Source: Leucoraja erinacea (Eukaryota). From it: a stretch of DNA of 64,000 nucleotides. This document shows, one piece after another, positions 12,402-63,250 of the stretch; the stretch's first letter is position 1, and each line of letters opens with the position of its first letter. The DNA lies in NCBI RefSeq assembly GCF_028641065.1, contig NC_073387.1, positions 15,934,001 through 15,998,000 on the forward strand, read 5' to 3'. A program made the position numbers and the translations under genes. Below the pieces are notes generated by a model. That model was not told the origin of the DNA. It made no database searches and worked only from the letters and a program-made list of their open reading frames with translations.

Positions 12402-12674
12402 CTGAACAATCTAATGCAGCGACTGAGGGAGACAACGTTACCCTGACCTGCTCTGTGTCAAAGGTCACTAAGTCAATGAGACTTGTTTGCATCAATGGTG
12501 ATGGCAAAATAGTGGGAGAGAAAATTTCCAAGGAGCCAAGGCAGGAAGAGACATCTTTACAGCTGATCATTCCAAAAGCTGTTGCAGACAAAAGGAATCA
12601 TCGCTGCGGTTTGTTTCTTCAAAATACTCCCAAGGTTTTAATTCCATATGGTCTGAATGCATTGCAATCCAATG
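12402..12674 (+). CDS. Gene A exon: membrane-proximal C2-like Ig domain of an ITIM-bearing IgSF receptor
   Basis: Acceptor ttgtttcccag, donor g|gtaagt, phase 1/1; reads EQSNAATEGDNVTLTCSVS...SLQLII...NHRCGLF; paralogous to 51208-51468. Confidence 0.88.
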
Positions 12675-14229
12675 GTAAGTGTCTTGTCTTCTGCTGTTTG
12701 TAATTTCCACAGAAACGGAATATTATTTATTTCTTCTAACGTATCATATTTCATAACCCACTGCGGTTAGTATCTCTGGTAACTCCTGCCCACTCTGTGG
12801 AAGGGTCTGTGGATCCCACATTGTCATCAACAGTAACATCTGAATCCGCAAAACTGGAGAATTAAAAAAAAAACATTCTCAGGATATCACCCATTCCTTG
12901 GGCATTAAGTGTGTGGCGTAGTTACTCCTAGTATCCAATGACTGCCTCCTCAAGATCACAAATGGGATGAGAATTAATTTCAAAATTAGCTTTTGGACAT
13001 TTTTGTCCTGAAACAACAGAGGAGTTGTGTCATTATCATTGGGGCGATGGGTGTGTCCTATCACACACAGACATGAATTCAAGACAACGCTCAGACACAC
13101 AATGAGCACTGTTGCATTTGAGATATATTTTATCAAGCCCTTCCTCATGTCTCCATCTGCACTTTCATTCAATGGTTCAGAAGTCAAGTGAACTCAATAA
13201 ATATCCAACAATATTTAATGCTTTCTGCTTTAACACTTCTTCGGGAAAGCTTTGTTTTGCCGACCCTGCAGTTTCAATACACCAACACATGTAAAACTCT
13301 CCTGGAAACAGCAACTTTCTTCATGATGGTAACTGTGAGCTTTTCGTTGCTGTTTATTTTCTCCTGCAGAGCAGCAGTCTCCCTCTGGGTGAGGACAATA
13401 GGGCTCTGACTACAGTCGGCTGAGAGTCCACCGAGGAATGAAGACTTTGTTTGTGCTCTGCCTGTGCCTCAGTGACAGTAGAACCCTGCTCCAGCAGCCG
13501 CTGCACCAGGGGAGAGGCCACCCCCACACCCACTCCCACTGTTGTATCCCCAACCCTTTGATTGGAAACCTGTGCTCATGGCTCTACAGAAAGCCGTGCG
13601 GAAGGTTGGAGATGGGATCTCTGACAGTCCTTGACATCTCTTCCATGCTGTAAGGCAGAAAAACCTTCCCATGTACTCATCCTCATCACAGTTTCCATCA
13701 GACTCCTCTGGGGCAGATCTGAATTTGAACCCTGACCTCCAAGGAGTTGCTATACAAACCTCCCAATCCTTTGGTCTAACTACAGCCGACTGCTGCCCAG
13801 TCTGAAGTGTCCAGCAAGTGATGGAGCCTTAAACTACATGGGTTTGTGAACAGATTGGCAGGTGTGCAGCATTGATGAACTGGTCAACCTTACTAGAAGA
13901 AATGAAAGATTATGCACAAAAATGCACAGAAGAATTTTCTGCTGCATTGCAATAGAATAGCAATAGGTTGGTCTAGTTCTTGATCAAAAGAAAAATAAGT
14001 ACATCTGATTAAATATGAAATAAAATCAGAGAATGCTGGAAGCATTCATCAGGTCAGAAAGCATCTGTAGAAAGATGAATATAATGAAGGTTGCTGATTG
14101 AAAATGTTTTGTGAGAATCCGTCAAAGTATTTTCAGACAAAAAAAATAAATTTACACTACTTCAATCTGCACTACAATCTGTGCACCATTTTGCTATTTT
14201 GGGCATTCCTTGTAGGAATCCTTATAGCA

Positions 14230-17947: not shown

Positions 17948-18013
17948 TCCCTGCAGAAACAGAAGAAGATATCCATTATGGATCTATCACCTTCCAGAAA
18001 AAAGCGGCAACAG
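17948..18013 (+). CDS. Gene A cytoplasmic exon 1, containing an ITIM
   Basis: Acceptor ttcttcatttcag, donor g|gtaaat, phase 1/1; VPAETEEDIHYGSITFQKKAAT (IxYxxI). Confidence 0.85.
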
Positions 18014-18422
18014 GTAAATCACTATTTTTCTTTTTTTTAAATCATTTTTTAGTTCTTTTTATCAACTGATTGTTGGCACTGGGTCTGAAATCTTGAATGT
18101 TTGTGCATCTTAGAAACACATTCAGCATTCCAGGACCCTCACGCTGCCCATTGACATGTTCTAGGACAGTCAGTTGAGACTTCGTTGATACGTCAATATT
18201 CTCTGAGTGGGTTCAGGACCCCTCCAGAGATCTGAGCACTGACATCCGAGCTGATGTCACAACGACAGATTGCAAATGAGATTTCTGAACATCAATGTCT
18301 AGCTGGCCCTTTATAATTAAGTGGAAAGCTGTACGTTTCAGACATTTGTATTCCATCATCACGTCCTTTGTCAGTGGGATCCACCAGTCATCGTTTAATT
18401 GCGATGTTTCCAATTATCACAG

Positions 18423-28986: not shown

Positions 28987-29445
28987 TCTCACACACACGC
29001 ATATACTCTCTCACACACACACACATGTACACACTAAAAACTCACACTCATACATACACTCACACATACACTNNNNNNNNNNNNNNNNNNNNNNNNNNNN
29101 NNNNNNNNNNNNNNNNNNNNNNNNNNNNNNNNNNNNNNNNNNNNNNNNNNNNNNNNNNNNNNNNNNNNNNNNNNNNNNNNNNNNNNNNNNNNNNNNNNNN
29201 NNNNNNNNNNNNNNNNNNNNNNNNNNNNNNNNNNNNNNNNNNNNNNNNNNNNNNNNNNNNNNNNNNNNNNNNNNNNNNNNNNNNNCAAACGCAGACACAC
29301 AGACACACATTCACACAGACACACACACACAGACACACACTTACATAGACACACAGACACTCACACACACAGAAACTCACACACACAGACATACACACAC
29401 ACAGACACTCACACACACACTCACACAAACACTCACATACCATAT
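28765..29445. repeat. Degenerate (CA)n microsatellite spanning an assembly gap
   Basis: CA-rich repeat on both sides of the N run. Confidence 0.95.
29073..29285. other. Assembly gap
   Basis: Run of N. Confidence 0.99.
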
Positions 29446-43355: not shown

Positions 43356-46300
43356 ACATAGAAACATAGAAACATAGAAATTAGTTGCAGGTGTAGGCCA
43401 TTCGGCCCTTCGAGCCTACACCGCCATTCAATATGATCATGGCTGATCATCCAACTCAGTATCCCGTACCTGCCTTCTCTCCATACCCCCTGATCCCCTT
43501 AGCCACAAGGGCCACATCTAACTCCCTCTTAAATATAGCCAATGAACTGGCCTCAACTACCCTCTGCGGCAGAGAGTTCCAGAGAGTCACCACTCTCTGT
43601 GTGAAAAAAGTTCTTCTCATCTCGGTTTTAAAGTATTTCCCCCTGATCCTTAAGCTGTGACCCCTTGTCCTGGACTTCCCTAACATCGGGAACAATCTTC
43701 CTGCATCTAGCCTGTCCAACCCCTTAAGAATTTTGTAAGTTTCTATAAGATCCCCTCTCAATCTCCTAAATTCTAGAGAGTATAAACCAAGTCTATCCAG
43801 TCTTTCTTCATAAGACAGTCCTGACATCCCAGGAATCAGTCTGGTGAACCGTCTCTGCACTCCCTCTATGGTAATAATGTCCTTCCTCAGATTTGGAGAC
43901 CAAAACTGTACGCAATACTCCAGGTGTGGTCTCACCAAGACCCTGTGCAACTGCAGTAGAACTTCCCTGCTCCTATACTCAAATCCTTTTGCAATGAAAG
44001 CTAACATACCATTCGCTTTCTTTACTGCCTGCTGCACCTGCATGCCTACCTTCAATGACTGGTGTACCATGACACCCAGGTCTCGCTGCATCTCCCCCTT
44101 TCCCAATCGGCCACGATTTAGATAATAGTCTTCTTTCCCGTTTTTGCCACCAAAATGGATAACCTCACATTTATCCACATTATACTGCATCTGCCAAACA
44201 TTTGCCCACTCACCAAGCCTATCCAGGTCCCCTTAGAGTCTCCTAGCACCCTCCTCACAGCTAACACTGCCCCCCAGCTTAGTGTCATCCGCAAACTTGG
44301 AGATATTCCCTTCAATTCCCTCATCCAATATATATTGTAAATAGCTGGGGTCGCAGCACTGAGCCTTGCGGTACCCCACTAGTCACTGCCTGCCATTGTG
44401 AAAAGGACCCGTTTACTCCTACTCTTTGCTTCCTGTTTGCAAGCCAGTTCTCTATCCACATCAATACTGAACCCCCAATGCCGTGTACTAATCTCTTATG
44501 TGGGACCTTGTCGAAAGCCTTCTGGAAGTCCAGATACACCACATCCACTGGTTCTCCCCTATCCACGCTACTAGTTACATCCTCAAAAAATTCTATAAGA
44601 TTCGTCAGACATGATTTACCTTTCGTAAATCCATGCTGACTTTGTCCAATGATTTCACCACTTTCCAAATGTGCTGCTATCCCATCTTTAATAACTGACT
44701 CTAGCAGTTTTCCCACTACTGATGTTAGACTAACTGGTCTGTAATTCCCCGTTTTCTCTCTCCCTCCCTTCTTAAAAAGTGGGGTTACGTTTGCTACCCG
44801 CCAATCCTCAAGAACTACTCCAGAATCTTTATGTCTTCCTTAGTGAAGACCGAACCAAAGTGGTTATTCAATTGGTCCGCCATATTCTTGTTCCCCATGA
44901 TCAACTCACCTGTTTCTGACTGCAAGTGACCTACATTTGTTTTAACTAATCTCTTTCTTTTCACATATCTATAAAAACTTTTGCAGTCAGTTTTTATGTT
45001 CCCTGCCAGTTTTCTTTCATAATCTATTTTTCCTTTCCTAATTAAGCCCTTTGTCCTCCTCTGCTGGTCTCTGAATTTCTCCCAGTCCTCCGGTATGCTG
45101 CTTTTCCTGGCTAATTTGTACGCATCATCCTTCGCTTTGATACTATGCCTGATTTCCCTTGTTATCCACGGATGTACTACCTTCCCTGATGTATTCTTTT
45201 GCCAAACTGGGATGAACAATTTTTGTAGTTCATCCATGCAGTCTTTAAATGTCTTCCATTGCATATCCACCGTCAACCCTTTTAGAATTAATTGCCAGTC
45301 AACCTTGGCCAATTCACGTCTCATACCCTCAAAGTTACCTTTCTTTAAGTTCAGAAACATTGTTTCTGAATTAACAATGTCACACTCCATCCTAATGAAG
45401 AACTCAACCATATTATGGTCACTATTGCCCAAGGGGGCATGTACAACAAGACTGCTAACCAACCCTACCATCTGAAGAAGGGTTTCGGCCCGAAACGTTG
45501 CCTATTTCCTTCGCTCCATAGATGCTGCTGCACCCGCTGAGTTTCTCCAGCTTTTTTGTGTAACCTTCGATTCTCCAGCATCTGCAGTTCCCTCTTAAAC
45601 ACTGCTAAGCAACCCTTCCTCATTACTCAATACCCAGTCTAAAATAGCCTGCTCTCTCGTTGGTTCCTCTACATGTTGATTTAGATAACTATCCCGCATA
45701 CATTCCAAGAAATCCTCTTCCTCAGCACCCCTGCCAATTTGATTCACCCAATCTATATGTAGATTGATGTCACCCATTATAACTGTTTTGCCTTTGTCGA
45801 TCGCATTTCTAATTTCCTGTTTGATACCATCTCCAACTTCACTACTACTGTTAGGTGGCCTGTACACAACACCCACCAGCGTTTTCTGCCCCTTAGTGTT
45901 TCGCAGCTCTACCCATACCGATTCCACATCCTCCAAACTAATGTCCTTCCTTTCCATTGCATTAATCTCCTCTCTAATCAGTAACGCTACCCCACCTCCT
46001 TTTCCTTTCTCTCTATCCCTCCTGAATATTGAATATCCCTGGATGTTCAGCTCCCAGCCTTGGTCACCCTGGAGCCATGTCTCCATGATCCCAACTATAT
46101 CATAGTCATTAATAGCTATCTGCACATTCAACTCATCCACCTTATTACGAATGCTCCTTGCATTGAGACACAAAACCTTCAGGCTTGTTTTTACAACACT
46201 CTTACCCCTTATACAATTATGTTGAAAAGTGGCCCTTTTTGATTTTTGCCCTGGTTTTGTCTGCCTGCCACGTTTACTTTTCACCTTGCTACCTATTGCT

Positions 46301-46393
46301 TCTACCCTCATTTTACACCCCTCGGTCTCTACGCTCACACATTTAAGAAACCCTTTCCCATTAACTCCATCCTCCACTATCCCATTCGAAACC
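43356..46393 (-). mobile_element. CR1 (subfamily B) ORF2 with internal deletions
   Basis: ORFs 45595-46617, 44815-45471, 44321-44716 and 43456-44190 are nearly identical to 8000-11020; (catagaaa)3 tail. Confidence 0.93.
45467..45600 (+). mobile_element. 134-bp Penelope-type insertion with a hammerhead ribozyme core
   Basis: CTGAAGA-a-gggt-ttcg-gccc-GAAAC-GTT at 45472-45499; 16-bp TSD actgctaa(c/g)caaccct at 45451-45466 and 45601-45616. Confidence 0.8.
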
Positions 46394-46399
46394 TTATCT

Positions 46400-47298
46400 C
46401 GAGGAAACTTATCAAAGGCTTTCTGAAAGTCTAGATACACTACATCCACTGGCACCCCTTCATTCATTTTACTTGTCACATCCTCAAAATATTCCAGAAG
46501 ATTAGTCAAGCATGATTTCCCTTTCATAAAACCATGTTGACTTGGACTAATCCTTTTACTGCTATCCAAATGCCCCATTGTCACATCTTTAATAATTGAC
46601 TCTATCATCTTTCCCATTACCGGTCAGGCTAACTGGTCTGTAATTCCCCATTTTATCTCTCCTTTCTTGAAAAGTGGGATAACTTTGGATAGCTATCCTC
46701 CAATCCACAGGAACTGATCCTGAATCTATTGAACATTGGAAAATGATCACCAATGTGTCCACTATTGCTGGAGCCACCTTCCTGAGAACCCTAAGATGCA
46801 GACCATCAGGCCCAGGGGATTTATCATCTCTCAGTCCCATTAGCCTACCCAAAACTATTTCTCACCTAAATAAAATTTATTTCAGTTCCTCTACCCCCTT
46901 AGATCCTCAATCCTCCAGTACATCTGGGAGATTGTTTGTGACTTCCTTAGTGAAGACAGATCCGAAGTACCTGTTCAACTCTTCTGCCATTTCCTTGTTA
47001 CCCATAATAATTTCACCCATGTCTGCATTCAAGGGGCCCACATTTGACTTTGCTACTCTTTTTCCCCTTAACAAATCTAAAGAAGCTTTTTAATGTCCTT
47101 CTTTATACTCCTGGCCAGCTTCCCATCGTACTTCATCTTTTCAGCTCGTATTGCCTGTTTAGTTTCCTTCTGTTGTCCTATGAAAGTTTCCCAATCCTCT
47201 GGCTTCCGGCTACTCTTTGCTGTGTTATACATCTTTTCTTTTAGTTTTATTCTAACCCTAACTTCTCTTGTCAGCCACGGTTGCCTCCTACTCCTCTT
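46400..47298 (-). mobile_element. CR1 (subfamily A) internal ORF2 fragment
   Basis: Homologous to ~620-1500 (SSKRISPSQHGF, KSSRKPEDWETF). Confidence 0.88.
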
Positions 47299-48393
47299 AG
47301 TTGAAAAAAAAAACAGGAAGTAAAACAGCCCAGAGCTCAAAATAGACGCATTATTGTGGTTGAACTGGACAAAACCTCCTAATGCAGCCTTAACCATTGC
47401 TCTTAATTTTGCTTCCGGTCCTGAATGTGATATGGGGAAAGGCAAAATCCCTCATTTTTCTTGGGATCAGTCAAATCTATATTATCTTCTGAAGGAGCTT
47501 GGAAAACACAATAATGACACCTTGTGCCCTTCTAACCTCACATTTAAGAAAAAAAAATAATAATAAACTTTAGGCAGAATAAAAACCATTTACAAAACTA
47601 TTTTTTAAGAAAACGGTCCTGACCCAAAACATCACCTAGCCATGTTCTCTATGGATGCTGCCTGACATGCTGAGTTACTCCATTATTTTGTGTTTTTCCT
47701 TGGTAAGCCAGAATCTGTAGTTCCTTGTTTTATACAAATCTAAAACAACATAAAAACATCTTCAGACACTTCCAGTGTCCTTACATTCAATAGTATCATA
47801 CTCAATAGCATTAGCATTTATCTTTACAATTAAACACCCTTACCACTCATGTGGTGATATTCTTTCCCTAGTATGAGGGATGTTCCCACCAGACTAATCC
47901 CTCAATGTCCAGCAGGAGAAGGTCCCTAGACTGTGGTCCTTCCCCACAGAGTTTTTATGTTGGTTGCAACAAGCTTCTGTTCATCCCTCAGCACATTTTC
48001 CTGCAGTCTGTAGTGGGTCAGGTGGCAACATTCCATGATGGACCTCATTTTGACATATCAATGCTTCATTCCTCAGCACAGTAACAGTGTGTGGGAGATG
48101 GGGCAACGTTCCTGTCCTTATAATCCAGCCTTTGACCCACAGTGAGCAGCATCAGAACAGTAGAATTGCCATTGAAGTATTATCTTTAGAAACAAAAAAG
48201 ACACTTCCTCACTCTTACGTTCAATGGGCTTAGCATTGAAGGCAAGCATAACATAAGCCTTCTTCAGTACCCTAACTACTTGTGTTGCCACCTTCTGTGA
48301 GCTATGAACGTGGACTCCAAATGTACTGAAGATATGTGGCTCAAACAGGCTCAGTCTAAAACTTGATGTTATTTCCCACAGGGAATCCACAAG

Positions 48394-48481
48394 ATGAAGC
48401 CCAGGTTTATCTGCAGCAGTTTGCCAGGTGGTTTGATGTTCGGTTTCTTTGTTTTCCTGCTTCGACCTGTTTCCAACCAGA
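48394..48481 (+). CDS. Gene B first coding exon: signal peptide
   Basis: Upstream acceptor atttcccacag (48381), aagATGa start context, MKPRFICSSLPGGLMFGFFVFLLRPVSNQ, phase-1 donor a|gtaagt. Confidence 0.75.
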
Positions 48482-48854
48482 GTAAGTGCTTTCTCTTCAC
48501 CGGTCACAATCACGTTGCTTTACTTTATCATTGTCCGTGTAAATCCGCACCCCATTGTCAATCTCACTTTTTCAATTCAATTCAACTTTAATGTCATCGC
48601 ACAAATACAAGTATGACTACAACGAAATGCAGTTTTGCGCCAGTCCGTAGTAGTTGTGCATAAAGAAATAAAAAAAATAGAAAGAGAGAAGATACAGAAT
48701 AATCAAAAAATACAGAATAATTAAACAATGGGGACGGAGGGACCGGAGAAATCTATCGGCGGGACTCCGAGTTCAGTAATGTGATTGTATTGTTGTAGAA
48801 GCTGTTCCTCATCCTACTAGTACGTGACCTGAGGCTCCTGTACCGCCTCCCAGA

Positions 48855-49255
48855 AGGATGAGGGGGTTCTTATAGAAACATATAAAATTATAAAAGGACT
48901 GGACAGCTAGATGCAAGAAAAATGTTCCCAATTTAGGGCTACAGAACCAGGAGCCACAGTCTTAGAATAAAGGGGAGGTCATTTACGACTGAGGTGAGAA
49001 AAAACTTTTTCATCCAGAGAATTGTGAATTTGTGGAATTCCCTGTCACAGAGGGCAGTGGAGGCCAAATCACTGGATGGATTTAAGAGAGAGTTAGATAG
49101 AGCTCCAGAGGCTAGTGGAATCAAGGGATATGGGGAGAAGGCAGGCACGGATTATTGATTGGGGATGATCAGCCATGATGACAATGAATGGCGGTGCTGG
49201 TACGAAGGGGTGAATGGCCTCCTCCTGCACCTATGTTTCTATGTATCTATATTTC
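48855..49255 (+). mobile_element. CR1 (subfamily A) 3' fragment in a gene B intron
   Basis: Matches 11678-12040 and shows the uninterrupted DIRS target site. Confidence 0.85.
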
Positions 49256-49513
49256 TAAAAGCACACCAGCTCAAAGATGCAGAGATTGTAGTGTAGTCTG
49301 AAGTAATGCAAAATAAAACTAATGTTTATGAAAATGCCCCAGGGGATGATTGGTTTAACGTATGATGAGTGTTTGTGGCTCTGGGCTTGGACTAGCTGGA
49401 GTTTAGAAGAATGAGGGGCGGGTCTAGTTTGTCAGCTGAGGTGAGATTGAGCCCAGTCATTGGACTGTCCACACCACTACTCACTCTGAATCTCATTGAT
49501 CTGTTTTTCACAG

Positions 49514-49783
49514 TTGAGGCAAGTCCACAGCGCCCTCTGCTGGGCAGTGACGTCACACTCAGCTGCACCATCTCCAGACTCTCAGATACAGTCAGTCTTC
49601 ACTGGAGACCAATGGTTTCATCCCAGAAGAACACGAGCAACACTGATCAGACCCGCCTGAATAACACGGTCTATCTGATGATCCGACATGTTACAGTGGA
49701 GGATGGGAAGTTGTATGTGTGTGATGTGCAGGAAAACGGAAACATTGTTCTCACCAGTAATGGAGATTTTACTGTAAACAACA
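49514..49783 (+). CDS. Gene B Ig domain 1 (C2/I-like)
   Basis: Acceptor tgtttttcacag, donor a|gtgagt, phase 1/1; EASPQRPLLGSDVTLSC...SLHW...YLMIRHVTVEDGKLYVC. Confidence 0.9.
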
Positions 49784-50760
49784 GTGAGTGTAAACACCTC
49801 CCATTACATATCAAGTAGACACTTGTATCACGGTGCTTCTTGGAATGTTATGCGTGCGCCCTGTGAAGAACTGTAGACAAGCAACTGCTCTCCTGTATAA
49901 AATGCTGCAATGATCAGGGAGAATTTTCCAGAAAGTCTCTCTGTGGAGCAGCTGTCTGCTTGTCTCTGTGTGACAGACACACAACACAGGAGTGATGATG
50001 TATTTCTGTAACGTTCAGTAAAGTATTTTGTCAGTTTAACTTGCCATCAATGCTCCAGTATCTGAGACTGAGATACTGATACAGGACTCGCGTCAAAGTG
50101 TCAGATAGAAGGTGTAGTCACCATGACAACCACCAGCACTTGCTGCTCACACTCACACTGGGGGTCCCGGTGCACACATCAGCACTGAACAACAATCCGT
50201 ACTCCCTCCCCTCACTGACCCTTCTCTCCGAGTCCTGCTGCTGTTTGAAGTGATTCCAGCTGCTGCAGACTCGGGCTTCAGATCAGCATTGAGCTGGGAG
50301 CAGGACCCAGGAACAGGGAAGGGCAGGGAATCAATGGGTGTGAATGGGAGAGTGATGGTGGGAATAATGGTAATGAAGGGACGGGAAGACCCGACCCACT
50401 TGAACTGCCAACCTGTCCGGATCTGGCCCCGCGCAGGCATTCTCTGGGCTGCTGCTGTCACCAGCCTCGACCTGCACCACCTCCCGCAGACTGACAGAGA
50501 GATTCACCTCCCGGGCCGCTCTCGGGAGTCTCCGGGAGGGTTCATTCCATCATGGAAGATTCCTGGACCGTCTGTGAAATATCCAAGCTTTACTGCAATT
50601 TACTACTTTACAGGAAATTTTGTAAAGATCTGATGAGTTTTGATGTAAAATTAATTTACATTTGAAGCTTGATCAGCTGAACAAAACACTGCAAATATAT
50701 ATGAGAATTTAGTTGTAACTGTAATACTGAAATGAGTTATCCTCTGTCTCTCCGATACAG

Positions 50761-51129
50761 TTTTATTTAAAACGGAATACACAGTTTACCGCTCCAGTAC
50801 AGATCATAGTGAACTTCACCTGGTTTGCTATAACAGTCGTGGGGATTCCAATACTGCCATGACCTGGACATCACGTCGCCTTCAACAGCAACAACAGCAA
50901 GTATTAGCATCAGCAACACACTCTCAGCCCATCAATGTCAAAGGGGCCAACTTCGGGAATCGACTGGTGACGTCAGTGAAACATTTCGATGGCAAGGATT
51001 TCAGTTTGAGGATTGTCCCCGTTTTATTTCAAGATGCCGGATGTTACAAATGTTTTCTTGGAAAAGACACATCAGTGAACAACGCGGGAAGGTCTCCATT
51101 TCTCACCGTTGATCTAATCGCAGTGAAAG
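50761..51129 (+). CDS. Gene B Ig domain 2 (V-set)
   Basis: Acceptor ctctccgatacag, donor g|gtagga, phase 1/1; LHLVC...MTW...NRL...DFSLRI...DAGCYKC. Confidence 0.9.
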
Positions 51130-51207
51130 GTAGGAGACAGAATGCCGCCAGTGTTTTCACTGATGAACTCATTGTTTAAAATGTAAACAACCTGCTTGTT
51201 TCCACAG

Positions 51208-51468
51208 TCACAGCTGAACCGTCCGATGCAGTGACTGAGGGAGACAACGTTACCCTGACCTGCTCTGTGTCTCACGTCACTGAGTCAATGAGACTGATTT
51301 GGATCAATGGCGATGACAAAAGTGTTGGAGAAAAGACACTGACCGTGGAAGAGAAATCACTGAGTCTGGTTATTCAGAAAGTTGAGAGGGGCAGAGGGAA
51401 TTGGAGATGTGGTTTGTTTCATCAAGACCTGCTCCGGCATTTTGTCCCGTACTATCAGGAGCCCAGTG
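51208..51468 (+). CDS. Gene B Ig domain 3 (C2 with WxC F-strand motif)
   Basis: Acceptor ttgtttccacag (in-frame alternative 6 nt downstream), donor g|gtaagc; VTEGDNVTLTCSVS...LIWING...SLSLVI...GNWRCGLF. Confidence 0.9.
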
Positions 51469-51624
51469 GTAAGCGACTCAGGGTTTGCTCTTCATACTTA
51501 GAATTATGGTCACATTTTGACGTGACTTATTATTGTCCTATTTGCCAGCACTCACTCCTCCTTTATAGCCTGTGTGGGACACTGCTGTGGTGCAGTGCCT
51601 GGGAATATGGACAGTGGGATAACT

Positions 51625-51809
51625 CACTGGAAACCAAGAGGCTCATCTCAGTAGAACAGGAGGAACAATTGATCAGATCCATCTGATTAACACCATCTAT
51701 CTGATGGTCCAACATGTTGGAGCAGGAAATCCCAATCTGTACACATGGGAAGTGCAGGAAAATGGCTCCATTGTTCTCACTGGAGACACCAATGTTGAAG
51801 TGGATCAGG
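51625..51809 (+). pseudogene. Decayed duplicate of the gene B domain-1 exon (pseudo-exon)
   Basis: HWKPRGSSQ*NRRNN / DQIHLINTIYLMVQHV...LYTWEVQENGSIVLT aligns to 49600-49783; TAG at 51652, +1 frameshift, Cys to Trp; donor g|gtgagt retained. Confidence 0.85.
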
Positions 51810-54649
51810 GTGAGTCCAAAGCTGCCTTGCAGCAGGTATTAAATAGTTCCTGATATCAAACTGTTCCACATATTGTACAGTGAGCACTGTCTCCACCGTG
51901 GGCTTTCACTGCAGGATGTGGGCATTGCCTTTAACCTGGGACATGGTGTAATTATAAAATGTTGGCACTAAGATTGATGGAGCCACACAGGAGAACCAAG
52001 GTATACATTTAATTGTGTTTGCATGAATCAAAGGGGATAAAATCCATCAATAGAGAGAAGCAAGTAGTCTTCTGTCTAGAATGGAGGAGGCAAATAAAAG
52101 TTAATTAAAGATAGAAGTACAGCTGTTCTGAGATTTGGGTCTTTTCTGAGCCATTCACATGGGTCAAGTGTTGTTCTTCACTCACTCCAGTGATCTGTCA
52201 TTTTACTTCAGAGTCACGTGAGTGACTATATGAAGAACCCTGTTCAGCCGCACGTGCGTCATTATGTCAGACGCATTGGTGCAGGTGCCCGGTTGGAGCA
52301 GCAGAGCTCCTCCAGCGGGTAAGTTTAAAACACCTCGAGGTAAGTGGAAATCTTAGTCTTGAGGTCGCTTTCTGTGCCGGTGGTTGGTTTTTTGAGTTTG
52401 ACGATGCAGAAAGCAAGTAAGGTGAAGGGGAGGCGACCCATGGCGAAAAGTGTGGAGGACCGCGGGAATGCGGTTAGCAGGTGCCCGCCTAGTTCACCGA
52501 CTTTGTCGCAAGCAGGGGATCTTGCGACTGCAGACTCGTTGCCTGGGAGCAGCTTTGCCGCGTCGGTAGGGTGTAAGGCCACATTCAAGTCTGCCAGACC
52601 TATAGATCCAGAGTCGGGCCAGGAGGTTTAACATCCAGGAGAGTCCGTTTGCTCACAGCTCTCACAAATCAAGCACCTAATGGAGAGGTTGCTCGAGAAG
52701 GACCCACTCCGGGAGGAGGAGTGTAGTTCTTGCCAAGCTGTTGGAGAGCCTGTGCCAGCAGCGCCTGTAGTAGGGCTACATAATCGCCCCCTTCTGGAGG
52801 AGGAGGGTATGCTGGGTCAGGATTATGCTGATGCCGAGGTAATGGTTGCACATAGCCCAAAGGGTGAAGGGCAAGAGGTCTTTTTGGCTGCTAAGTTTGC
52901 AATCCCCAAAGAAGCAGGGGAGCCATTGGAGGAGGAGTTGGCTACTATAATCAATTATATGCTCACCCATCAGCTCCAGGAGCTGACAATGGATGATACG
53001 GCTAAAAAAATATGAAACCCCAGTTAACTGTGGGTTGTTGAAGGTGCTGGTGGTTAACCATGTGATATGGGGCCAAATGGGGGTTGCAGTGAGAACACAA
53101 GAATTGAAGGTCCAGAGGGTGCTTAAATTGCTAGCAGCAGGTAACACTACATTCGCCAGATCGGTGGACGAGGGACACATGACTGAAGTTCACCAGGATG
53201 CTCTGGGGCTTTTGTGCAGTGCACATTTTGAAATGAACTGCCTTAGAAAGAGTGCCATACGCCCCGCCATTCACCCAAAATTTGCAGCCCCATAATGTTC
53301 AGTTACCAAATCTGTTGTTTGGGGAGGACCTCGCAAAGCGAGTCAAAGAACTGGATGAAGAGACCTCATCAAAGTGCCAATAAGCAGCAGAATGGGCAAA
53401 AGGTTTTTCCCCTATCGACGGGATGCTATCACAGAAACTGGTGAAGGGGCGAGTCGTTCTTTCTCAAACACACAAGCCTGGTATCCTGCCACAGGCACAA
53501 GGGCAAAGATGAATTTCCCTACGAGGGGCCGGGGCAACAAGCTCAGTCAGGAAATGTGCAGGTAAGAGACTTTGCTCCTGAAGGAAATAAATTAAGTGGG
53601 GAAGATGTTCAAGTTGGGGGCAGGTTACACTTGTTTCTCAAAGAATGGCAGGAGATAACATCTGATCTATTTGTTTTGGGCAGTATAGAGGGGTTTCGAA
53701 TTGAATTCTGCCCTACTGTGTGTCCGCCCACTTAGCATGTCCCACGTCGGACTCTCGTGTTTTCACACAAAGAGAATATACAGATACAGGCAGAGCTTGG
53801 GATATTGTGCAAAAAAGAGGTTATTGAGAAATTGGTTCGTCAATCCCATCAGTTTGTGTCAAGTATTTTTCCTAGGTCTAAAACGGATGGGGGATGAAGG
53901 ATGGAGAATCATTCTGGACCTGACGAGCCTGATCCCTTTTGTGCAGTGTAGACATTTCAAAATGGAAACTTTTTCGACTGCTAATCAGATGGTTTCCAAA
54001 GGGTGTTATATGGCAAGCATAGATCTCAAGGATGCTTATTACACAATGTCTGTTCATTGTGATGATAGGAGATATTTGAAATTTAGCTGGATGAGTCAAT
54101 TGTGGCAATTCAAAGCACTGCCTAATGCGTTAACCTCAGATCCGAGATTGTTTACCAAATTGTAAAAACCAATGATTGGCTTACTCCGAACTCAGGGTCA
54201 TGTGGTAATGGCCTATTTGGATGATATTTTTATTGTAGGGCACACTCGAGAGGCAGCTGAATCATCTGTGTCAGTTGTTAAACTCACTTTTGAGCAGTTG
54301 GGGGTTCATTATCCATCCAGATAAATCCAAATTAACACCAGTTAAAGTTATTGATTACTTGGGCATCACCATTAACTCAGATCACATGTTAGTGACTATG
54401 CCGAGTGATAAAAAGCAGCAGTAAATTGAAGAATGTGTCAAGCTTTTTGAGGAACAACTACCCTCAATTAGACAGGTGGCCAAGTTGATTGGCAAGCTGG
54501 TGGCTGTTTTTCCAGCAGTACAGTTTGGGCCTCTGCATTATCAACAATTACAATGAGCAAAAGATCAAGCATTGGGAGCACATGCTGGCCATTTTGACAG
54601 GCCTATGAAGTTGCCAACAGAAGCCATTTCTGAGATACAATGGTGGATC

Positions 54650-56335
54650 TTCTAAAAGTCTAAAATGGAGGAGTATCGCAACGTGCACTGGTCTAGACAC
54701 CTTATCTCCCTCGGACCCTTTGGAATTTAACTCAAGGACACTCTTTGTTCAAAATGAAGGAAAGACTGATTTAACAACGGAGAGACGAACAGGAGAGCCG
54801 AACGTGGAAAACATCACAAGGACAAATGGCGGTTTAAGATCTTAAAATCGTTTTACAAAACACAGAGAATTAATAATAATTAACAACACTAATATAGAAA
54901 TAGAAATGGAAACTAACCAGAACTATATAATGGGGCAAAATGTAATAATGTGTTAAAAAGACAGACTATCCAGTATATAGAGCGAGACAGTTAAGCAGAG
55001 ATAAAGAAATAACAAATAACAAATTTTAGAACTAACGTAGACAATATCATAAGTTTTAGTGCTATGTACTTTGTGTGGGGAAGGGAGGAGACTCAGGCAT
55101 CTGGCATAGTTCCAGGAGCCTGATTCTGGTTAACCCTTTCAGCCGACAACTGACTATTATCAAAGGTATAACTAACTATAAATAGTTAGTAGATAAAAGT
55201 GTTAGATATATAAGTTTCACAGTAGCTGAACATACGATTTGATAAGTCTTAATGAAATATATATATATAGTGCAATTGGGTGAAATACAACTGATTTTGA
55301 AAGGTCCCGCCCTCCTAGGCTAAGAGTAATAAAGGGAGCGGAGCCCAAGCAATCAATTGTATAACATCAACATTGGAAGTCGAATTGATGTCAAACCCCA
55401 CAGTGTGTGGGACACTCATTACAGTGTCGACTACTCTAGACACTGTAATTTCACTTGTTCAATTTTTTTTAAATCACAATATGTCACAACTATGTGTTTC
55501 TTTTTTTAAGGACAATCGTAAAAGGGATCTAACAAAGGAAGTCAATAACATAAACGTTCCCCAAATATCCAGAGTCCTGACGTATGGATGCACCATAATA
55601 ATTAAGGGTATTAAAATCAGCGAAAATGCATGACGATAAACTAAAGAAAATGGGAGGAATCGCATTCTGCAGCTAGAACATAAGGGGTATTAATGAACCA
55701 ATCAAAAGGGGCAAGATAATAGCTCAGTTGAAATCATACAACACGGACATTACTTTTTTACAAGAAACGCATCTTAAACACCAAGATCAGATCAGGTTGA
55801 GGGCGAATTGGATAGGCCAAACATATCACTCTTCACACACCTCGAAATCCAGAGGTACCGCAATTATTATTCGCAAAGGAATACCATTTAAATCTAAGAA
55901 CATTATATCAGATAAGGAAGGGAGATATCTTATAGTTACAGGAAGATCTATGCTACGCCAATCACCTTGGTAAATATATACGCGCCCAATTTTGATAATC
56001 CTCAATTTTTCAATAAAATCTTGAATACAATCGCAGAGTTCAACTACCAAAATGTTATAATTGGAGGAGACTTCAACTGTGTTTTAGACCCATACTTAGA
56101 TAAATCGATGCAAAAACAAAGAGGTATTATGAAATCTAAAACTAGTGAACTCTTAAATACATACACAAAAAATACAAAAATAACAGACGTTTGGAGGATC
56201 GCGAATCCGACTGGAAGGGAATACTCGTTTTATTCAATGGTACACAAAACATACGTATAGATTATTTCCTAGTGGATACAAAACTAATCCCTTATACTAT
56301 GAACCCTAAATATCACACCAATACAATTTCAGATC
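54650..56335 (+). mobile_element. Internal L1-clade fragment (upstream spacer + ORF2 APE endonuclease) inside the second DIRS
   Basis: NIRGINEPIKR, FLQETHL, SDKEGRY, NIYAPN, GGDFN, DVWR, IDYFL. Confidence 0.82.
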
Positions 56336-57608
56336 CCTTCTGCGATTATGAGGGATCAATTATTTAGAGCTTCTGGGAACATTTTATGGGCTTAAAGCTT
56401 ATTGTTTTACCAAAAGTCAGGTGCATGTGCAGGTTCAAATTGACAACACTGCTGCAGTAGCATATCTGAATCATATGGGTGGTGTCAAGTTGAAAGCTTG
56501 TGATAGGTTGGCTAATCAGATCTGGAGCTGGTGTATTGACAGAAACATTTGGATTTCAGCAATCCATTTACCTAGTAGATTCAACATAGTCGCAGACACA
56601 AGGTCACGAAAATTCAATGACAACATAGAATGGAAGTTGAACCATGATATATTTGAAAGTGTTGTTGCTCGCTTTGGGATGCCAGATATCAATTTGTTTG
56701 CATCCAGACTAAACCACCAGTTGCCTAAATACATTTCATGGTAACCAGTTCCTGGGGCAGCAGCGGTTGATGCATTCTCGCTGCACTGGGGTGGAATGTT
56801 TTAATATGTATTTCCTCCATTCTGCCTCGTCAGTCGATGCCTGCAAAATATCAAGCAGGACTCCGCTTCAGGAGTATTGGTGGTACCCAACAGGCCTACT
56901 CAGCCATGGTATGCTCATGTTTTGGAGGTGGCTACTGAGCCTCACATGATTGTTCTAAAACACAAAAACCTAATAGTGAATCCTGTAACTGGTGATCAGC
57001 ATCCTTTACATGATCGTATTGATCTGTTAATTTGCAAATTCTAAGGAGACCATACCTGGGGAGAGGACTATCCAAGCGCACCATGGATATTATCACTGCA
57101 GTCTGGAGGGATAGTACCCAAAAGCAGTACATCTCTTCGATAAGAAAGTGGGACGTGTTCTGTTTATGGCAGAATATTTCATATCAAAATGCAGACATCC
57201 CAGATATGCTAGAGTTTTTGTCAACACTTTATTTCGATCAAAAGTTAAGCTATAGTGCGATCAAAACAGCCAGAAATGCTCTGTCTTCATATTTACCCAT
57301 GGTGTCAGAATTACATGCAGTGGGGACACATTCATTAGTCTCTAGATTCATGAAGGGAGTTTTTAATTCCCATCCTCCGAAGCCCAGGTATTCGGTTATC
57401 TGGAATATGAGCGAAGTTCTAATGCTGCTTCGCCAGTGGGCTCCTGTCACAGACCTATCTCTAGCCAAACTCACCATGAAGGTGGTCATGCTTTTGGCAT
57501 TGGTATCAGCCCAACGTGTGCAGACATTACAGATGCTGCGGCTAGACAGGATGGAGATATCAGCAGATGCCATCACTTTTTATGTTTATGATCGGCTCAA
57601 GCAGAGTA

Positions 57609-58332
57609 ATTGATACAAATACATCGATAGATGCTTCTGAACACATCATCAGTGGTGTAACCTGGGGTCAATGGGTGTTTCGGGTCTTTCAACATCAGAC
57701 ACCCTCACCCAGGTGACCCAGCCATGGTTGATCAGACCACGACTTGTGTTCAGGTGGCATTCGCTCCTTCCCATGGACCTCCTCTCCTGATCCAGAGCCA
57801 TCTCGAGGCCTTCTCCGCTACCTCTGTGGTGTTCTTGATGGCCTTTCTCCTTGCCACTCCGTTTATGCCTGGTGCACTGAAGGCTTTGTAGAGTGATTGC
57901 CCTGCAAAACCTCTGCAGCCAACCTCGATGGGCATACACCTTGCCTTCTAGCCCTGCTTGTGGCAGTCTATGACCAACTCTTCATACTTGGCCATCTTCC
58001 TCTTGTGGGCCTCTTCCAAACGGTCCTCCCATGGCACTGTCAGTTCCAACAAGACGATGCTTTTGGTCGCCTCTGAGACCAGGAGGATATCTGGCCGCAG
58101 GGTGGTCATGGCAAAGTGCCGTGGGAACTTCAGCTGTTTCACCAGGTCTACGGAAAGCTGCCAGTCCTGCGCAGTCGCCAGGATACCTGACTGATTCCTG
58201 GCTGCTGTGGTTCTTGGCAGCTGCACTCCAGCCTTCACGAAGGTGATCATCTGGGTGGTGGGGCGTTCTCGTCTACAGCTGCTGATTCCCATGCTGATGG
58301 CTTCTGCAATGGGTTTAAGAACCTGGTCGTGA
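57609..58332 (-). mobile_element. 5'-truncated HERO-like non-LTR retrotransposon (restriction-like endonuclease domain + 3' UTR)
   Basis: TTLRPDILL...LELTVPWE...KMAKY...PIEVGCRGF...ASRWLW; 7-bp TSD cagagta at 57602-57608 and 58333-58339; the DIRS YR frame resumes afterwards (DSRLCVV). Confidence 0.82.
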
Positions 58333-58767
58333 CAGAGTAGAATAGGGGTGACTGGGTTTAACATTATCTTTTCTGCATACTCCAAGGACTCCCGCCTGTG
58401 TGTAGTGTCATGTTTGTCTCAGTACATTGAGGCTACCAGAACCTTGAGGAGAACATTGTTCATTAGCCACAAAAATGCACAGTAAGGTGTCGGTGCAAAC
58501 TATCTCAAGGTGGCTAAAGCAGGTTCTGGTAAGCGCTGGGACACTGCTTCACTGGGGGTATGTTTCTCACATAGAAACATCAAAAATAGGTGCAGGAGTA
58601 GGCCATTTGGCCCTTCGTACCAGCACCATCATTCAATATGATCACGGCTGATCTTCCAAAATCAGTACCCTGTTAAGCTTTTACCCCATATCCCTCGATT
58701 CCCTTTGCCCTAAAAGCTGAATCTCGTGAAACCTCACAACTCACTGGGTAATGGATAGGACAGCTTT

Positions 58768-60775
58768 GAAACATAGAAACATAGAAAATAGGTGCAGGAG
58801 TAGGCCATTTGGCCCTTCGAGCCTGCACCGCCATTCAATATGATCATGGCTGATCATCCAAATCAGTATCCTGTACCTGCCTTCTCTCCATGCCCCCTGA
58901 TCCCTTTAGCCCCAAGGGCCACATCGAACTCCCTCTTAAATATAGCCAATGAACTGGCCTCAACTACCTTCTGTGGCAGAGAATTCCAGAAATTCACCAC
59001 TCTCTGTGTGAAAAATGTTTTCCTAATCTCGGTCGTAAAATATTTCCCCCTTATCCTTAAGCTGTGACCCCTTGTCCTGGACTTCCCTAACATCGGGAAC
59101 AATCTTCCTGCATCTAGCCTGTCCAATCCCTTAAGAATTTTGTAAGTTTCTATAAGATCCCCCCTCAATCTTCTAAATTCTAGCGAGCACAAACAAAGTC
59201 TATCCAGTCTTTCTTCATATGAAAGTCCTGACATCCCAGGAATCAGTTTGGTGAATCTTCTCTGTGCTCCCTCTATGGCAAGAATGTCTTTCCTCAGAAT
59301 AGGAGACCAAAACTGTACACAATACTCCAGGTGTGGTCTCACCAAGACCCTGTACAACTGCAGTAGAACCTCCCTGCTCCTATACTCAAATCCTTTTGCT
59401 ATGAATACTAACATACCATTCACCTTCCTCACTGCCTGCTGCACCTGCATGCCTACTTTTAATGATTGGTGTACCATGACACCCAGGTCTCGTTGCATCT
59501 CCCCTTTTCCTAATCGGCCACCATTCAGATAATAGTCTACTTTCCTGTTTTTGCCACCAAAGTGGATAACCTCACATTTATCCACATTATACTGCATCTG
59601 CCATGCATTTTCCCATTCACCCATCCTATCCATGTCACCGTGCAGCCTCCTAGCATCCTCCTCACAGCTAACACTGCTCCCCAGCTTCATGTCATCCGCA
59701 AACTTGGAGATGTTGCATTCAATTCCCTCGTCCAAATCATTAATATATATCGTAAATAGCTGGGGTCCTAGCACTGAGCCTTGCAGTACCCCACTAGTCA
59801 CTGCCTGCCATTGTGAAAAGGACCCGTTTAGTCCTACTCTTTTCTTCCTGTCTGCCAGCCAGTTCTCTATCCACATCAATACTGAACCCCCAATACCGTG
59901 TCCTATAAGTTTGTATACAAATCTCTTTTGTGGGACCTTGTCGAAAGCCTTCTGAAAGTCCAGATATAACACATCCACTGGTTCTCCCTTATCCATTCTA
60001 CTAGTTACATCCTCGAAAAATTCTATAAGATTCGTCAAATGATTTACCTTTCATAAATCCATGCTGACTTTGTCCAATGATTTCACCACATTCCTAAAGG
60101 TGCTGCAATCCCATCTTTAATAACTGATTCTAGCAGTTTCCCCACTACCGACGTTAGACTAACTGGTCTGTAATTCCCCATTTTCTCTCTCCCTCCCTTT
60201 TTAAAAAGTGGGGTTACATTAGCTACCCTCCAATCCTCAGGAACTACTCCAGAATCTAAAGAGTTTTGAAAAATTATCACTAATGCATCCACTATTTCTA
60301 GGGCTACTTCCTTAAGTACTCTGGGATGCAGCCTATCTGGACCTGGGGATTTATCAGCCCTTAATCCATTCAATTTACCTAACACCACTTCCCGGCTAAC
60401 CTGGATTTCACTCAGTTCCTCCATCTCATTTGCCCCGGTCCCCTGCTATTTCCAGCAGATTATTTATGTCTTCCTTAGTGAAGACAGAACCAAAGTAGTT
60501 TTTCAATTGGTCTGCCATGTCCTTGTTCCCCATGATTAATTCACCTGTTTCTGACTGCAAGGGACCTACATTTGTGTTAACTAATCTTTTTCTCTTCACA
60601 TATCTATAAAAACTCTTGCAGTCAGTTTTTAATGCTCCCTGCCAGTTTTCTTTCATAATCTATTTTCCCTTTCCTAATTAAGCCCGTTGTCCTCCTCTGC
60701 TGGTCTCTGAATTTCTCCCAGTCCTCCAACAGGCTGCTTTTTCTGGCTAATTTGTATGCTTCATCTTTTGTTTTG
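58768..60775 (-). mobile_element. 5'-truncated CR1 (subfamily B); another CR1 3' UTR piece at ~58570-58720
   Basis: 391-aa RT ORF 58863-60038; (catagaaa)n tail. Confidence 0.93.
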
Positions 60776-61315
60776 ATTTGGAGAGATTTGGACCAAATGC
60801 AAGCAGGTGTGACTAGTGTAGTCGGGACATGTTGGCCACAATGGGCAAGTTGGTCCAAAGGGCTTGTTTCCACTCTGTATCACTCCATTGGCTCTAATAG
60901 CTTCTCAGGCAATATGGCCAAGAGTGAGAATTCAGAGCCTGTAAAGTTTCAGCTGTGAATCTGTACCCAGTCCCTCTTGTGCAGACTCTGCAGTGTACAC
61001 CTAGTTGACATCAGTTTAGATAACGGATCAACCAATTTTGTGTACATTCTGACACATCTCATTCACCCAAAAAATATTCACAATGTTCCAAAAGTAATGA
61101 AGCAGAAAATATCAAAGCAAAGTCTCGGATGTTATGGATGAAACATAAAAGGTACCCAAGATTGGCACAATTATTTCTCACTCTTGACACAATATTTCTC
61201 ACTGTGTCCCACTGTCTAATGCAGAATGTTTATGATGTTACATCACAGATAGGAGTATTTAATTATGAAACAAGATGGAATATGAAACTGAAAATCTCAA
61301 CTTTGTCCTTCACAG

Positions 61316-61404
61316 ACATTAGGATCATCACAGTCCTTGGCTACTTGTCGATTAAACTGGCCGTTGCTCTTGGACTAATTTGCTGCTCGTGGAGGATGAA
61401 CCGG
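61316..61404 (+). CDS. Gene B transmembrane exon with an intramembrane lysine
   Basis: Acceptor ctttgtccttcacag, donor cgg|gtgaga, phase 1 to 0; DIRIITVLGYLSIKLAVALGLICCSWRMNR. Confidence 0.8.
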
Positions 61405-62408
61405 GTGAGAATTTCATGAGCTTTTCAATATATCAGAAACCAATGGCGTTGAAAAAATGGATGTTCACAGAACATATTAGAATGGTGACAATCTGTATTT
61501 TAGTGTTTGGCATTGAACAGTGCAACACAGAAATACATGATTTAAACTTATTCCTTTTGCCTGCTCTTGATCCAAATGTCTCCATTCTCAGCATATTAAT
61601 TAGCCAATCTAAAATCCTCTTAAACGCCACTATCATAACTATTTCTACCACAAACCTTCGATAAACTTCATAAAGGTTAAATGTGTGTTATTTGCTCTAT
61701 CTCAGGCTGCATCCTGGTCAACCTCTTCTGCGTTTTATCCAAAGCCTTCCCGTCCTTCCTTTAATGGGGCTACTAGAACTCCTAATGTGAATAATCAAAG
61801 TTTTTTTAAACATGCAGCATGACTTCCCAACTCCTATTCTCAATGGCCCAACCGATGAAGGCAAGCATACTTTGTGCATTCTTTACCATTTTATCTACTT
61901 GTGTTGTTACATTCAGAGAGCTATGGACATGAACCTTTAAACTTTTTCTATCCATTTACTTGTCCAATGTTTTTTAAATGCTGTTACAGAATCTTCCTCA
62001 GCTATCTCCTCTGGCAGCTCATTCCAGAAACCTATCACCATCTGATTGAAAAAATTGCCCCTCAGGTTCCTATTAAATCTTTCACCTCTCATTTTGAACC
62101 CATGTCCTCTGATTCTTGATACCCCAACCCGGGTAAAGACTTTGTTCATTCACATATCTATTCCTTTCTACAATCTAAACTTGTAATTTTGTAAGATATC
62201 AAATATGAAAGAACACTTTATCAACACAAATTGGAAAAAAATTCCACATTCAATATTCACGATGATATTGGTGTGTTTTTAGTTGAATTAAATGACCATG
62301 AAAATGTTTCTAACTTGGTCTGCAACCTCTTACCTATCACTTCCAGTCTATTGTTTATTATTGTTTATCTTTATTTAAAAGCATATTTGTTTCTCTTGTT
62401 TGATACAG

Positions 62409-62516
62409 AGCAGCAGATATTCACAGGAATTTCCAGGAAACACCACAAATAATTCAAGAGCTGTCGCATTGCAGACCCTGAATTCTGACCCTGATCTGAG
62501 AGATCAGAATGAATGA
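62409..62516 (+). CDS. Gene B terminal cytoplasmic exon (no ITIM or ITAM)
   Basis: Long pyrimidine tract and tgatacag acceptor, phase 0; SSRYSQEFPGNTTNNSRAVALQTLNSDPDLRDQNE*. Confidence 0.65.
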   Translation, partial: SSRYSQEFPGNTTNNSRAVALQTLNSDPDLRDQNE

Positions 62517-63250
62517 CCCAGCGTAGAAGATGACACAGCCCATCAAGCTCATGCCCAAGAAAATATGTGTTTCTGAAAAAATATTGAGCCGAATGGAGAC
62601 TTTGGAAATAGATTTGCGGATTTATTGCGGATTTGCTTTGTGATTGTTTGGTACGTTGCCAGTCAGTTGTATCCCACAGTGAACATGTTAACAGTCTCAG
62701 TATCAGTGTGGGCTATTTTGCTTTGCAAAGACCATCTCCTGAAGTGAAAATTATTCATTTGTCATCTTTGCCAAAAAAATACACTGAATTAATTGCAGAG
62801 AATGCAAAAGAAGACTTGGAAATGCAGAACGTAGCATTTTGGGGAATTGTATTATTTACTTTCAAACTAATTTGTAGCTTTCCTGCTTTGTTCCTGCTCA
62901 GATTTAACATAATCGTTGCACCAAGCTTTTATGTGCATCGCATTTCCTGCCTGATTACTTTCAAGTTGGAATCTGTTTTCTGCAAACTTGTACATCTGCA
63001 ACATCTGTATTCAGCTTCCAGAGATATTGTGAAAACATAATGAAGATGAATGATGCAACAATAAAAATGACCATTGCAGGGAAATTTCTGTCCCTTCAGC
63101 TTGTTTTTCAGAATTATAACAACTAACAATAATGATTTTACTGAAAATATATATTTCAGTTCTCACTCAGATGTAGAAAGTGGTGAACTGAACTGTTGGA
63201 GGTTGTATCTATAAGATTATATAATCACCCGTATGTCGCCTGTATTCTCT

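Follow-up and report, generated by a model that had tools for sequence, protein, structure and literature searches.

CD4 and LAG-3 are usually regarded as a pair that stands apart from other receptors, with a design of four immunoglobulin (Ig) domains in the order V-C2-V-C2 that arose once. In both, the membrane-distal domain is the one that binds ligand, and D4 of CD4 combines a WxC pattern with a canonical disulfide between strands B and F. Sharks have separate CD4 and LAG-3 genes, and we use the Cx(C/H) LCK motif of CD4 and the inhibitory motifs of LAG-3 as defined in the same source (PMC10768021). DICPs, which have been reported from teleosts, holosteans and the coelacanth, are laid out as D1-D2 or as D1a-D2a-D1b-D2b and occur in inhibitory, activating and secreted forms; their D1 and D2 each carry the cysteines C23 and C104 plus additional DICP-specific cysteines (bioRxiv 10.1101/2021.06.11.448072). 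Here we describe gene B of the skate Leucoraja erinacea, which occupies positions 48394-62516 of the plus strand in a stretch of 64,000 nucleotides (hereafter the window; RefSeq assembly GCF_028641065.1, contig NC_073387.1, positions 15,934,001 to 15,998,000). On balance we consider it probable that gene B is a recent duplicate in a tandem cluster of a large, unnamed Ig superfamily (IgSF) family of jawed fishes, and both profile searches and a structural model support the view that this family is CD4/LAG-3-like in profile and predicted fold while being neither CD4 nor LAG-3.

Gene B consists of six exons of 88, 270, 369, 261, 89 and 108 nucleotides (nt), all on the plus strand, which a local script joined into an open frame of 1185 nt, or 394 codons, with its sole stop at the end. 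A first-pass annotation made from the letters of the window had proposed these exons, and we confirm them to the base. All ten internal borders have AG before and GT after the exon; the donors of exons 1-5 read GTAAGT, GTGAGT, GTAGGA, GTAAGC and GTGAGA, and every acceptor AG is preceded by a run of pyrimidines. Introns 1-4 are all in phase 1, the usual phase for Ig exons. The order of the encoded parts is a leader, a small C2/I-type domain of 89 residues, a V domain of 122 residues, a C2 domain of 86 residues with a WxC motif, a transmembrane (TM) helix with a lysine and a tail of 35 residues. Searches were run exon by exon or with database relatives rather than with the joined 394-residue sequence, and proteins of the family match exons 2-4 at tblastn values of 1e-30 to 1e-140, so that these exons lie far beyond chance.

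Exon 1 (48394-48481), with an A at -3 of its ATG, encodes a signal peptide of 29 codons plus one base and ends in phase 1; the leader is 90% identical to that of P0192, the RefSeq model of LOC129701498 from the same species and the nearest relative of gene B. Intron 1 (48482-49513, 1032 nt) holds repeat fragments. Exon 2 (49514-49783; acceptor tttttcacag) encodes the small C2/I-type domain (LSC...LHW...LYVC), which is matched by the generic Pfam models Ig, Ig_3 and I-set and is 90% identical to residues 145-233 of P0192 and 92% identical to D2 of P0162. The V-set domain of exon 3 (50761-51129; LVC...WTS...DAGCYKC; Pfam V-set, 7.7e-8) is 88% identical to P0192 residues 235-356, and the C2 domain of exon 4 (51208-51468; Pfam ig and Ig_3), with the WxC motif NWRC in its F strand, is 92% identical to residues 358-443. 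Exon 5 (61316-61404; acceptor tccttcacag) encodes the TM helix with its central lysine (IITVLGYLSIKLAVALGLICCSW), and two more in-frame acceptors would give alternative starts at 61253 and 61256. Exon 6 (62409-62516; acceptor tttgatacag) encodes the cytoplasmic tail, which ends in AVALQTLNSDPDLRDQNE followed by the stop. A candidate poly(A) signal AATAAA, a pattern match only, lies on the plus strand some 545 nt past the stop (63060-63065).

A search with exon 4 against 1.84 billion representatives returned 315 relatives at E<=1e-3. The family is found in sharks (Scyliorhinus, Heptranchias, Pristiophorus, Cetorhinus, Carcharodon, Chiloscyllium, Rhincodon, Heterodontus and a nurse-shark entry), in rays and skates (Leucoraja, Amblyraja, Rhinoraja, Pristis, Mobula, Hypanus, Narcine and Hemitrygon), in the chimaera Callorhinchus, and in bony fishes (coelacanth, sturgeons, bowfin, eels, cyprinids, characins, catfishes, salmonids and mormyrids). 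Nearly all of these proteins are called "uncharacterized", and a few are mis-named as CD276, CEACAM5-like, VCAM1-like or obscurin-like. Members have four or eight Ig domains, with D1 being V-like and free of cysteine (WEW...AG.F), D2 a small C2/I-type domain (C..W..YxC), D3 a V domain (YTLYR...C..W.W...DAG.Y.C) and D4 of C2 type (LTC.VS...W...WxC). They end either in an uncharged helix followed by tyrosines of the type found in immunoreceptor tyrosine-based inhibitory motifs (ITIMs), or in the helix GYLxVKL..A.GLI followed by a short tail.

Gene B has its leader, D2, D3, D4, lysine helix and tail in common with this family, whose members include skate LOC129701493-98, V9NJF3 and si:ch73-7i4.3. 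In the numbering of P0192, the invariant residues are C161, W174, Y211 and C213 in D2, C256, W269, D325, G327, Y329 and C331 in D3, and C375, W388, W422 and C424 in D4, and all are kept in exons 2, 3 and 4 of gene B, respectively; the tryptophan of the WxC motif in D4 is present in 28 of 30 family members. Exons 5 and 6 also carry the activating cassette of the family (GYLxVKL..A.GLI with ..LQTLNSDPDL). Gene B differs from these members in having no N-terminal cysteine-free V domain with its WEW signature, and in having a dead exon of D6 type after D4. As side observations, the nurse-shark (Ginglymostoma cirratum) protein V9NJF3 (P0319, 916 residues, "obscurin-like protein") is an eight-domain member of the family, and we found no paper on it or on si:ch73-7i4.3. 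No Pfam Ig model recognises the cysteine-free D1; in the structural model of P0192 discussed below, this domain (residues 30-142) can be overlaid on the V domain of NTB-A (SLAM family), which is likewise free of a disulfide, with Z 13.5 and a root-mean-square deviation (rmsd) of 2.0 Å.

The ectodomain of gene B is thus D2-D3-D4, with the leader spliced directly to D2 in the model, an arrangement that the first-pass annotation had read as an unusual C2-V-C2 design. LOC129701498 keeps D1 between leader and D2, and a tblastn search with D1 of six relatives, P0192 included, found no relic of it in intron 1 or in the 4.4 kb upstream (44000-49600, E<0.02), the sole match being the start of exon 2. 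The D1 exon has therefore been lost from this copy, and the earlier statement that intron 1 holds repeats and no V exon was correct; RNA reads that fall on the intron have many differences and loose ends, as expected of repeat copies. The same D1-less layout is found in isoform X3 of a Heptranchias gene (P0017), there combined with an ITIM tail. Since P0017 shows the same omission, gene B is a trimmed member of the family and not an outsider, and its C2-V-C2 order is the four-domain module minus its first exon rather than a primitive or special design.

A second trace of trimming lies only 80 nt past exon 4, where a dead Ig exon of the second-module D2 type (D6-like) is found on the plus strand (51549-51809). 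Over 157 nt its DNA matches exon 2 at 74% identity, an indel of 1 nt included, and it has decayed through an in-frame TAG and a frameshift, whereas the Ig exons of gene B next to it are open and intact. The protein encoded by its 3' half is 91-93% identical to D6 of gene A, the eight-domain neighbour in the window (LOC129701496; P0159 residues 593-638), and to D2 of P0200 (LOC129701493). The same fossil is present in the read-through tail of the P0192 model and must therefore predate the last duplication. Queries with D5, D7 and D8 found no relics in intron 4, and the rest of this intron (51810-61315, about 9.5 kb) consists of mobile elements without further Ig relics. Because D1 has been lost and a D6-type fossil follows exon 4, gene B can be seen to derive by trimming from a longer gene of the cluster. 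We also note that the first 33 read-through codons of intron 4 (51469-51570) are identical to residues 444-476 of P0192, compared to just 88-92% identity for the Ig exons; either the Ig exons diverge faster than the adjoining intron, as under diversifying selection, or gene conversion has been patchy.

To compare the family with described receptors we built a profile (A1) from 30 four-domain members. Against the PDB, human LAG-3 comes first (2e-12) and CD4 is found at 8e-8. In these alignments strands E, F and G of D3 together with D4 fall on D1-D2 of LAG-3 and also on its D3-D4, with kWtC of the family placed on PWGC and PWQC, and the V-to-C2 junction of the family is aligned with both corresponding junctions of LAG-3. 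The WxC motif is otherwise rare, being found in 1 of 586 F-strand-like motifs among 112 unrelated multi-Ig matches, against 28 of 30 for D4 of the family. A word search of a large database with the family profile retrieved family members only, and neither CD4 nor LAG-3.

A similar picture emerges from structure. The AlphaFold model of P0192 made from A1 (predicted local distance difference test, pLDDT, 78.8; predicted template modelling score, pTM, 0.74) has single strands spanning the D1/D2 border (132-147) and the D3/D4 border (348-360). A Foldseek search of the PDB with this model gives LAG-3 and CD4 in places 1 to 7, LAG-3 being the top match, with values from 2.6e-17 to 4e-15 over about 430 columns. 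In VIA comparisons the model matches four-domain CD4 with Z 17.5-15.2 (17.5 over 321 residues) and LAG-3 with Z 13.7. When only D3-D4 is considered, it fits D3-D4 of LAG-3 with Z 13.0 and an rmsd of 3.7 Å over 162 residues at 25% identity, and D1D2 of CD4 with Z 13.5 and an rmsd of 3.2 Å; CD4 D1D2 fits D1-D2 and D3-D4 of P0192 alike, at 3.2-3.6 Å. An Atlas structure search with D3-D4 found a CD4 cluster first and a "G6F-like" cluster next. The first-pass annotation had called gene B CD4/LAG-3-like but neither of the two, and at the level of profile and predicted fold this description is supported. The family may be related to CD4 and LAG-3, and in the model its four-domain module folds into two rigid V-C2 rods as in those receptors.

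The likeness has clear limits. LAG-3, the top match by both profile and Foldseek and, like the family module, a V-C2-V-C2 rod, is a single conserved gene, whereas gene B belongs to a tandem multigene family; gene B has three domains and no D1, YxC in place of WxC in D2, a lysine in its TM helix and a tail free of the LAG-3 inhibitory motifs. CD4 gives the highest VIA scores, shares the continuous strand that crosses each V/C2 border in the P0192 model, and has in its D4 the same combination of WxC and a canonical B-F disulfide as D4 of gene B. However, the cysteine-free V domain is D1 in the family and D3 in CD4, sequence identity is only 13-15%, and gene B has no Cx(C/H) motif. Where CD4 and LAG-3 have four domains, with WxC in both D2 and D4, gene B has only C2-V-C2, trimmed from a parent family of four or eight domains, with NWRC in D4 and YVC in D2.

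The C-terminal part of gene B is of a kind well known from other receptors. In KIR2DS, NKG2C, TREM and SIRP-beta, a lysine in the middle of the membrane pairs with an aspartate of DAP12-type adaptors. The TM helix of gene B has a single lysine, at residue 11 of 23, and the short tail (SSRYSQEFPGNTTNNSRAVALQTLNSDPDLRDQNE) contains neither Cx(C/H) nor a LAG-3 motif, as had been noticed before; nor does it match the ITIM pattern [SIVL]xYxx[ILV] or contain the YxxL pair of an immunoreceptor tyrosine-based activation motif (ITAM). One mid-membrane basic residue and a short tail free of ITIM and ITAM are what is found in receptors coupled to adaptors. Exon 5 is 89-97% identical to the TM exons of the skate paralogues P0218, P0215 and P0198, and the tail exon is about 65% identical to those of skate paralogues. 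The helix motif GYLxVKL..A.GLI is common to gene B and sharks, and its lysine is conserved across the short-tailed members, so that the lysine helix first pointed out in gene B alone is part of a conserved family cassette. The tail motif A[VI]ALQTLN[SP]D[PT]D (LQTLNSDPDL) is likewise kept in skates (P0010, P0215) and in sharks (P0016, P0164, P0165, P0167), the shark genera with both conserved motifs being Pristiophorus and Heptranchias.

That sharks and skates have both kept the lysine helix and the LQTLNSDPDL tail argues for a function of the cassette and points to signalling via an adaptor. If expressed, the product of gene B would be a type I membrane protein with the ectodomain D2-D3-D4, and by analogy with the receptors named above its lysine might pair with the aspartate of an ITAM-bearing adaptor of DAP12 or FcR-gamma type. 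Gene B is thus probably an activating receptor, again by analogy, and could act as the activating counterpart of adjoining ITIM-bearing members such as gene A; all three of expression, adaptor pairing and activating function we infer only. Genes A and B together look like a paired-receptor cluster. Paired families such as KIR, LILR, SIRP, NITR and DICP similarly form tandem clusters in which members with long ITIM tails occur beside others with a short tail and a charged TM residue; unlike them, gene B has an ectodomain that is CD4/LAG-3-like in predicted form and not KIR-, LILR- or NITR-like.

Several observations weigh against placing gene B as a recent duplicate within a CD4/LAG-3-like family. 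The fold evidence comes from the paralogue P0192, which is about 90% identical, and not from the joined sequence of gene B. Searches of the PDB with single sequences do not place CD4 or LAG-3 first: the best matches of exons 2, 3 and 4 are PD-1/LILR, MXRA8/VNAR and an antibody VH, respectively, P0192 finds LILRB1/CD276, and a sturgeon member finds OBCAM/VEGFR1. Such misleading single-sequence matches probably explain why some paralogues are named "CD276 antigen homolog" in RefSeq. The CD4-specific Pfam models (C2-set, PF05790; CD4-extracel, PF09191) are not matched, and only the generic Ig, V-set and I-set models are. Gene B also has no D1, and therefore could not use a membrane-distal site in the manner of CD4 and LAG-3. 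Its exon 5 sits behind 9.5 kb of mobile elements, and the acceptor of this exon lies 8 codons within the stalk (SLDISSFT) that the models of paralogues retain. Two further points concern annotation. The product of gene B is absent from the 353 database proteins that we fetched; RefSeq appears to have no prediction for the gene, which automatic annotation seems to have missed. In addition, the RefSeq models of two neighbours, LOC129701496 and LOC129701498, end by reading through the donor of an Ig exon into the intron, and since they stop in this way the annotation probably lacks their TM and tail exons.

The last point against this placement is expression. We checked four RNA runs that carry the same species label and are of unspecified tissue, using 5-25% of each, over 47600-52300, and found in them no reads specific to gene B and no splice joints. 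Depth on the exons of gene B is below 1, except for exon 4, where it is about 4 in one run; all of these reads differ from gene B, which has C at 51224 (9 of 9 reads differ) and A at 51247 (8 of 8), and so come from a paralogue. As a separate observation, run X6 has a few reads on the fossil exon (51682-51838), all of which differ from the window at 51715, 51729 and 51756; they derive from expressed D6- or D2-type exons of paralogues and not from the fossil.

These results bear on the most serious alternative, in which gene B is silent or dying. It would then have arisen as a by-product when unequal crossing-over in the cluster removed D1 and the distal module, and its frame would be open only because the duplication is young. 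Specific RNA is missing although paralogue reads are present, no database protein corresponds to the gene, D1 is lost, exon 4 has a dead exon next to it, mobile elements fill intron 4 and the acceptor of the TM exon is shifted relative to paralogue models. On the other hand, the six exons are open with ten canonical splice sites, all structural cysteines and tryptophans have been retained even though the protein has diverged by about 10% from that of its nearest paralogue, the adjacent fossil has already acquired a stop and a frameshift, and the RNA sample is a small part of four runs from unspecified tissue. We regard a silent copy as a possibility to be taken seriously, though a doubtful one. 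The open six-exon frame stands; the earlier description of gene B as complete is not confirmed in the sense of expression, and neither is the 5' border of exon 5, for which 61253 and 61256 are alternatives.

A second alternative is that gene B encodes a secreted protein of three domains, the donor of exon 4 being unused or only partly used so that translation ends at the stop at 51684-51686, with exons 5 and 6 being the remnant of another unit. The RefSeq model of P0192 ends in exactly such a read-through and that of gene A reads through its last Ig exon, the open reading frame at 51231-51686 would allow it, and exon 5 is some 10 kb away. However, the exon 4 donor GTAAGC is canonical, the RefSeq models of P0010, P0215, P0198 and P0218 join D4 to the same type of TM exon, and the TM and tail exons of gene B are intact and, respectively, 89-97% and about 65% identical to those of these paralogues. 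The read-through tail itself is intron sequence running into the fossil exon. We consider a secreted product rather unlikely, and prefer the membrane-bound form encoded by all six exons.

Membership of the DICP family, with gene B as a representative from cartilaginous fishes of its D1/D2 Ig pairs, is unlikely on indirect evidence. The layouts with one or two D1-D2 pairs and the inhibitory, activating and secreted forms of DICPs recall those seen here, and bowfin and coelacanth have members in DICP and in the unnamed family alike. However, D1 of the unnamed family is cysteine-free where D1 of DICPs has C23 and C104, and the name dicp is given to none of the 86 listed relatives from teleosts, where the names are "uncharacterized" or si:ch73-7i4.3; carp relatives in UniProt carry the name of this zebrafish gene. 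Although CD4 and LAG-3 give the best matches by profile and by structure, orthology of gene B with either has next to no probability. The gene stands among many tandem paralogues, some with ITIMs and some with a lysine in the TM helix; it has a tail with neither Cx(C/H) nor a LAG-3 motif, has YxC and not WxC in D2, belongs to a family whose disulfide-less domain is D1 and not D3, and is just 15-25% identical to LAG-3. Sharks, moreover, possess separate genes for both receptors (PMC10768021).

Gene B is therefore best described as a D1-less, probably activating and possibly silent member of a CD4/LAG-3-like family, and the interest lies mainly in this family, with gene B itself adding less. Across jawed fishes the family shares with the CD4/LAG-3 pair the rare WxC motif, a predicted fold of two rods and up to 25% identity to D3-D4 of LAG-3, and with both ITIM and lysine-helix forms it offers a concrete outgroup for the origin of the co-receptor of major histocompatibility complex (MHC) class II and of its checkpoint relative. 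The bearing on CD4/LAG-3 origins that the first-pass annotation had attached to gene B thus belongs to the whole family and not to this gene in particular, and with its unusual design explained by LOC129701498, which keeps D1, and by the equally trimmed P0017, that interpretation is supported in part. More tentatively, the family may represent a sister stock of CD4 and LAG-3 that has survived from chimaeras to teleosts. It would be an old multigene set of paired inhibitory and activating receptors with V-C2-V-C2 rods and WxC, from which CD4 and LAG-3 would be two specialised single-copy offshoots. What gene B contributes is an example of a member that has an open frame and the activating cassette in spite of the loss of its membrane-distal domain and of an entire distal module. 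Were the sister-stock scenario true, gene B and its fossil would show how exon loss within a cluster trims such modules and joins them anew; were gene B silent, only the point about the family would be left.

The last C2 exon of gene A lies on the plus strand (12401-12676) and is 100% identical to residues 752-851 of P0159 (851 residues, Leucoraja erinacea), an identity that includes the read-through to 12700. This exon is 58% identical to exon 4 of gene B. The first-pass annotation assigned an ITIM tail to gene A, and a match to such a tail is found at 17956-18021. The last C2 domain of gene A has a cysteine for the tryptophan of the C strand (LVCING) and a histidine for the tryptophan of WxC (NHRC), and is among the few domains of the family without this motif. 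Apart from mobile elements, genes A and B are all that the window holds, and the DNA between them is the debris of such elements. Within intron 4 of gene B, the segment 52600-60900 contains a plus-strand retroelement with an open reading frame for a tyrosine recombinase (Phage_int_SAM_4), interrupted by an endonuclease fragment of a long interspersed nuclear element (LINE), and a LINE reverse transcriptase on the minus strand. Elsewhere in the window, a run of 213 N (29073-29285) lies inside a microsatellite region rich in (CA/TG).

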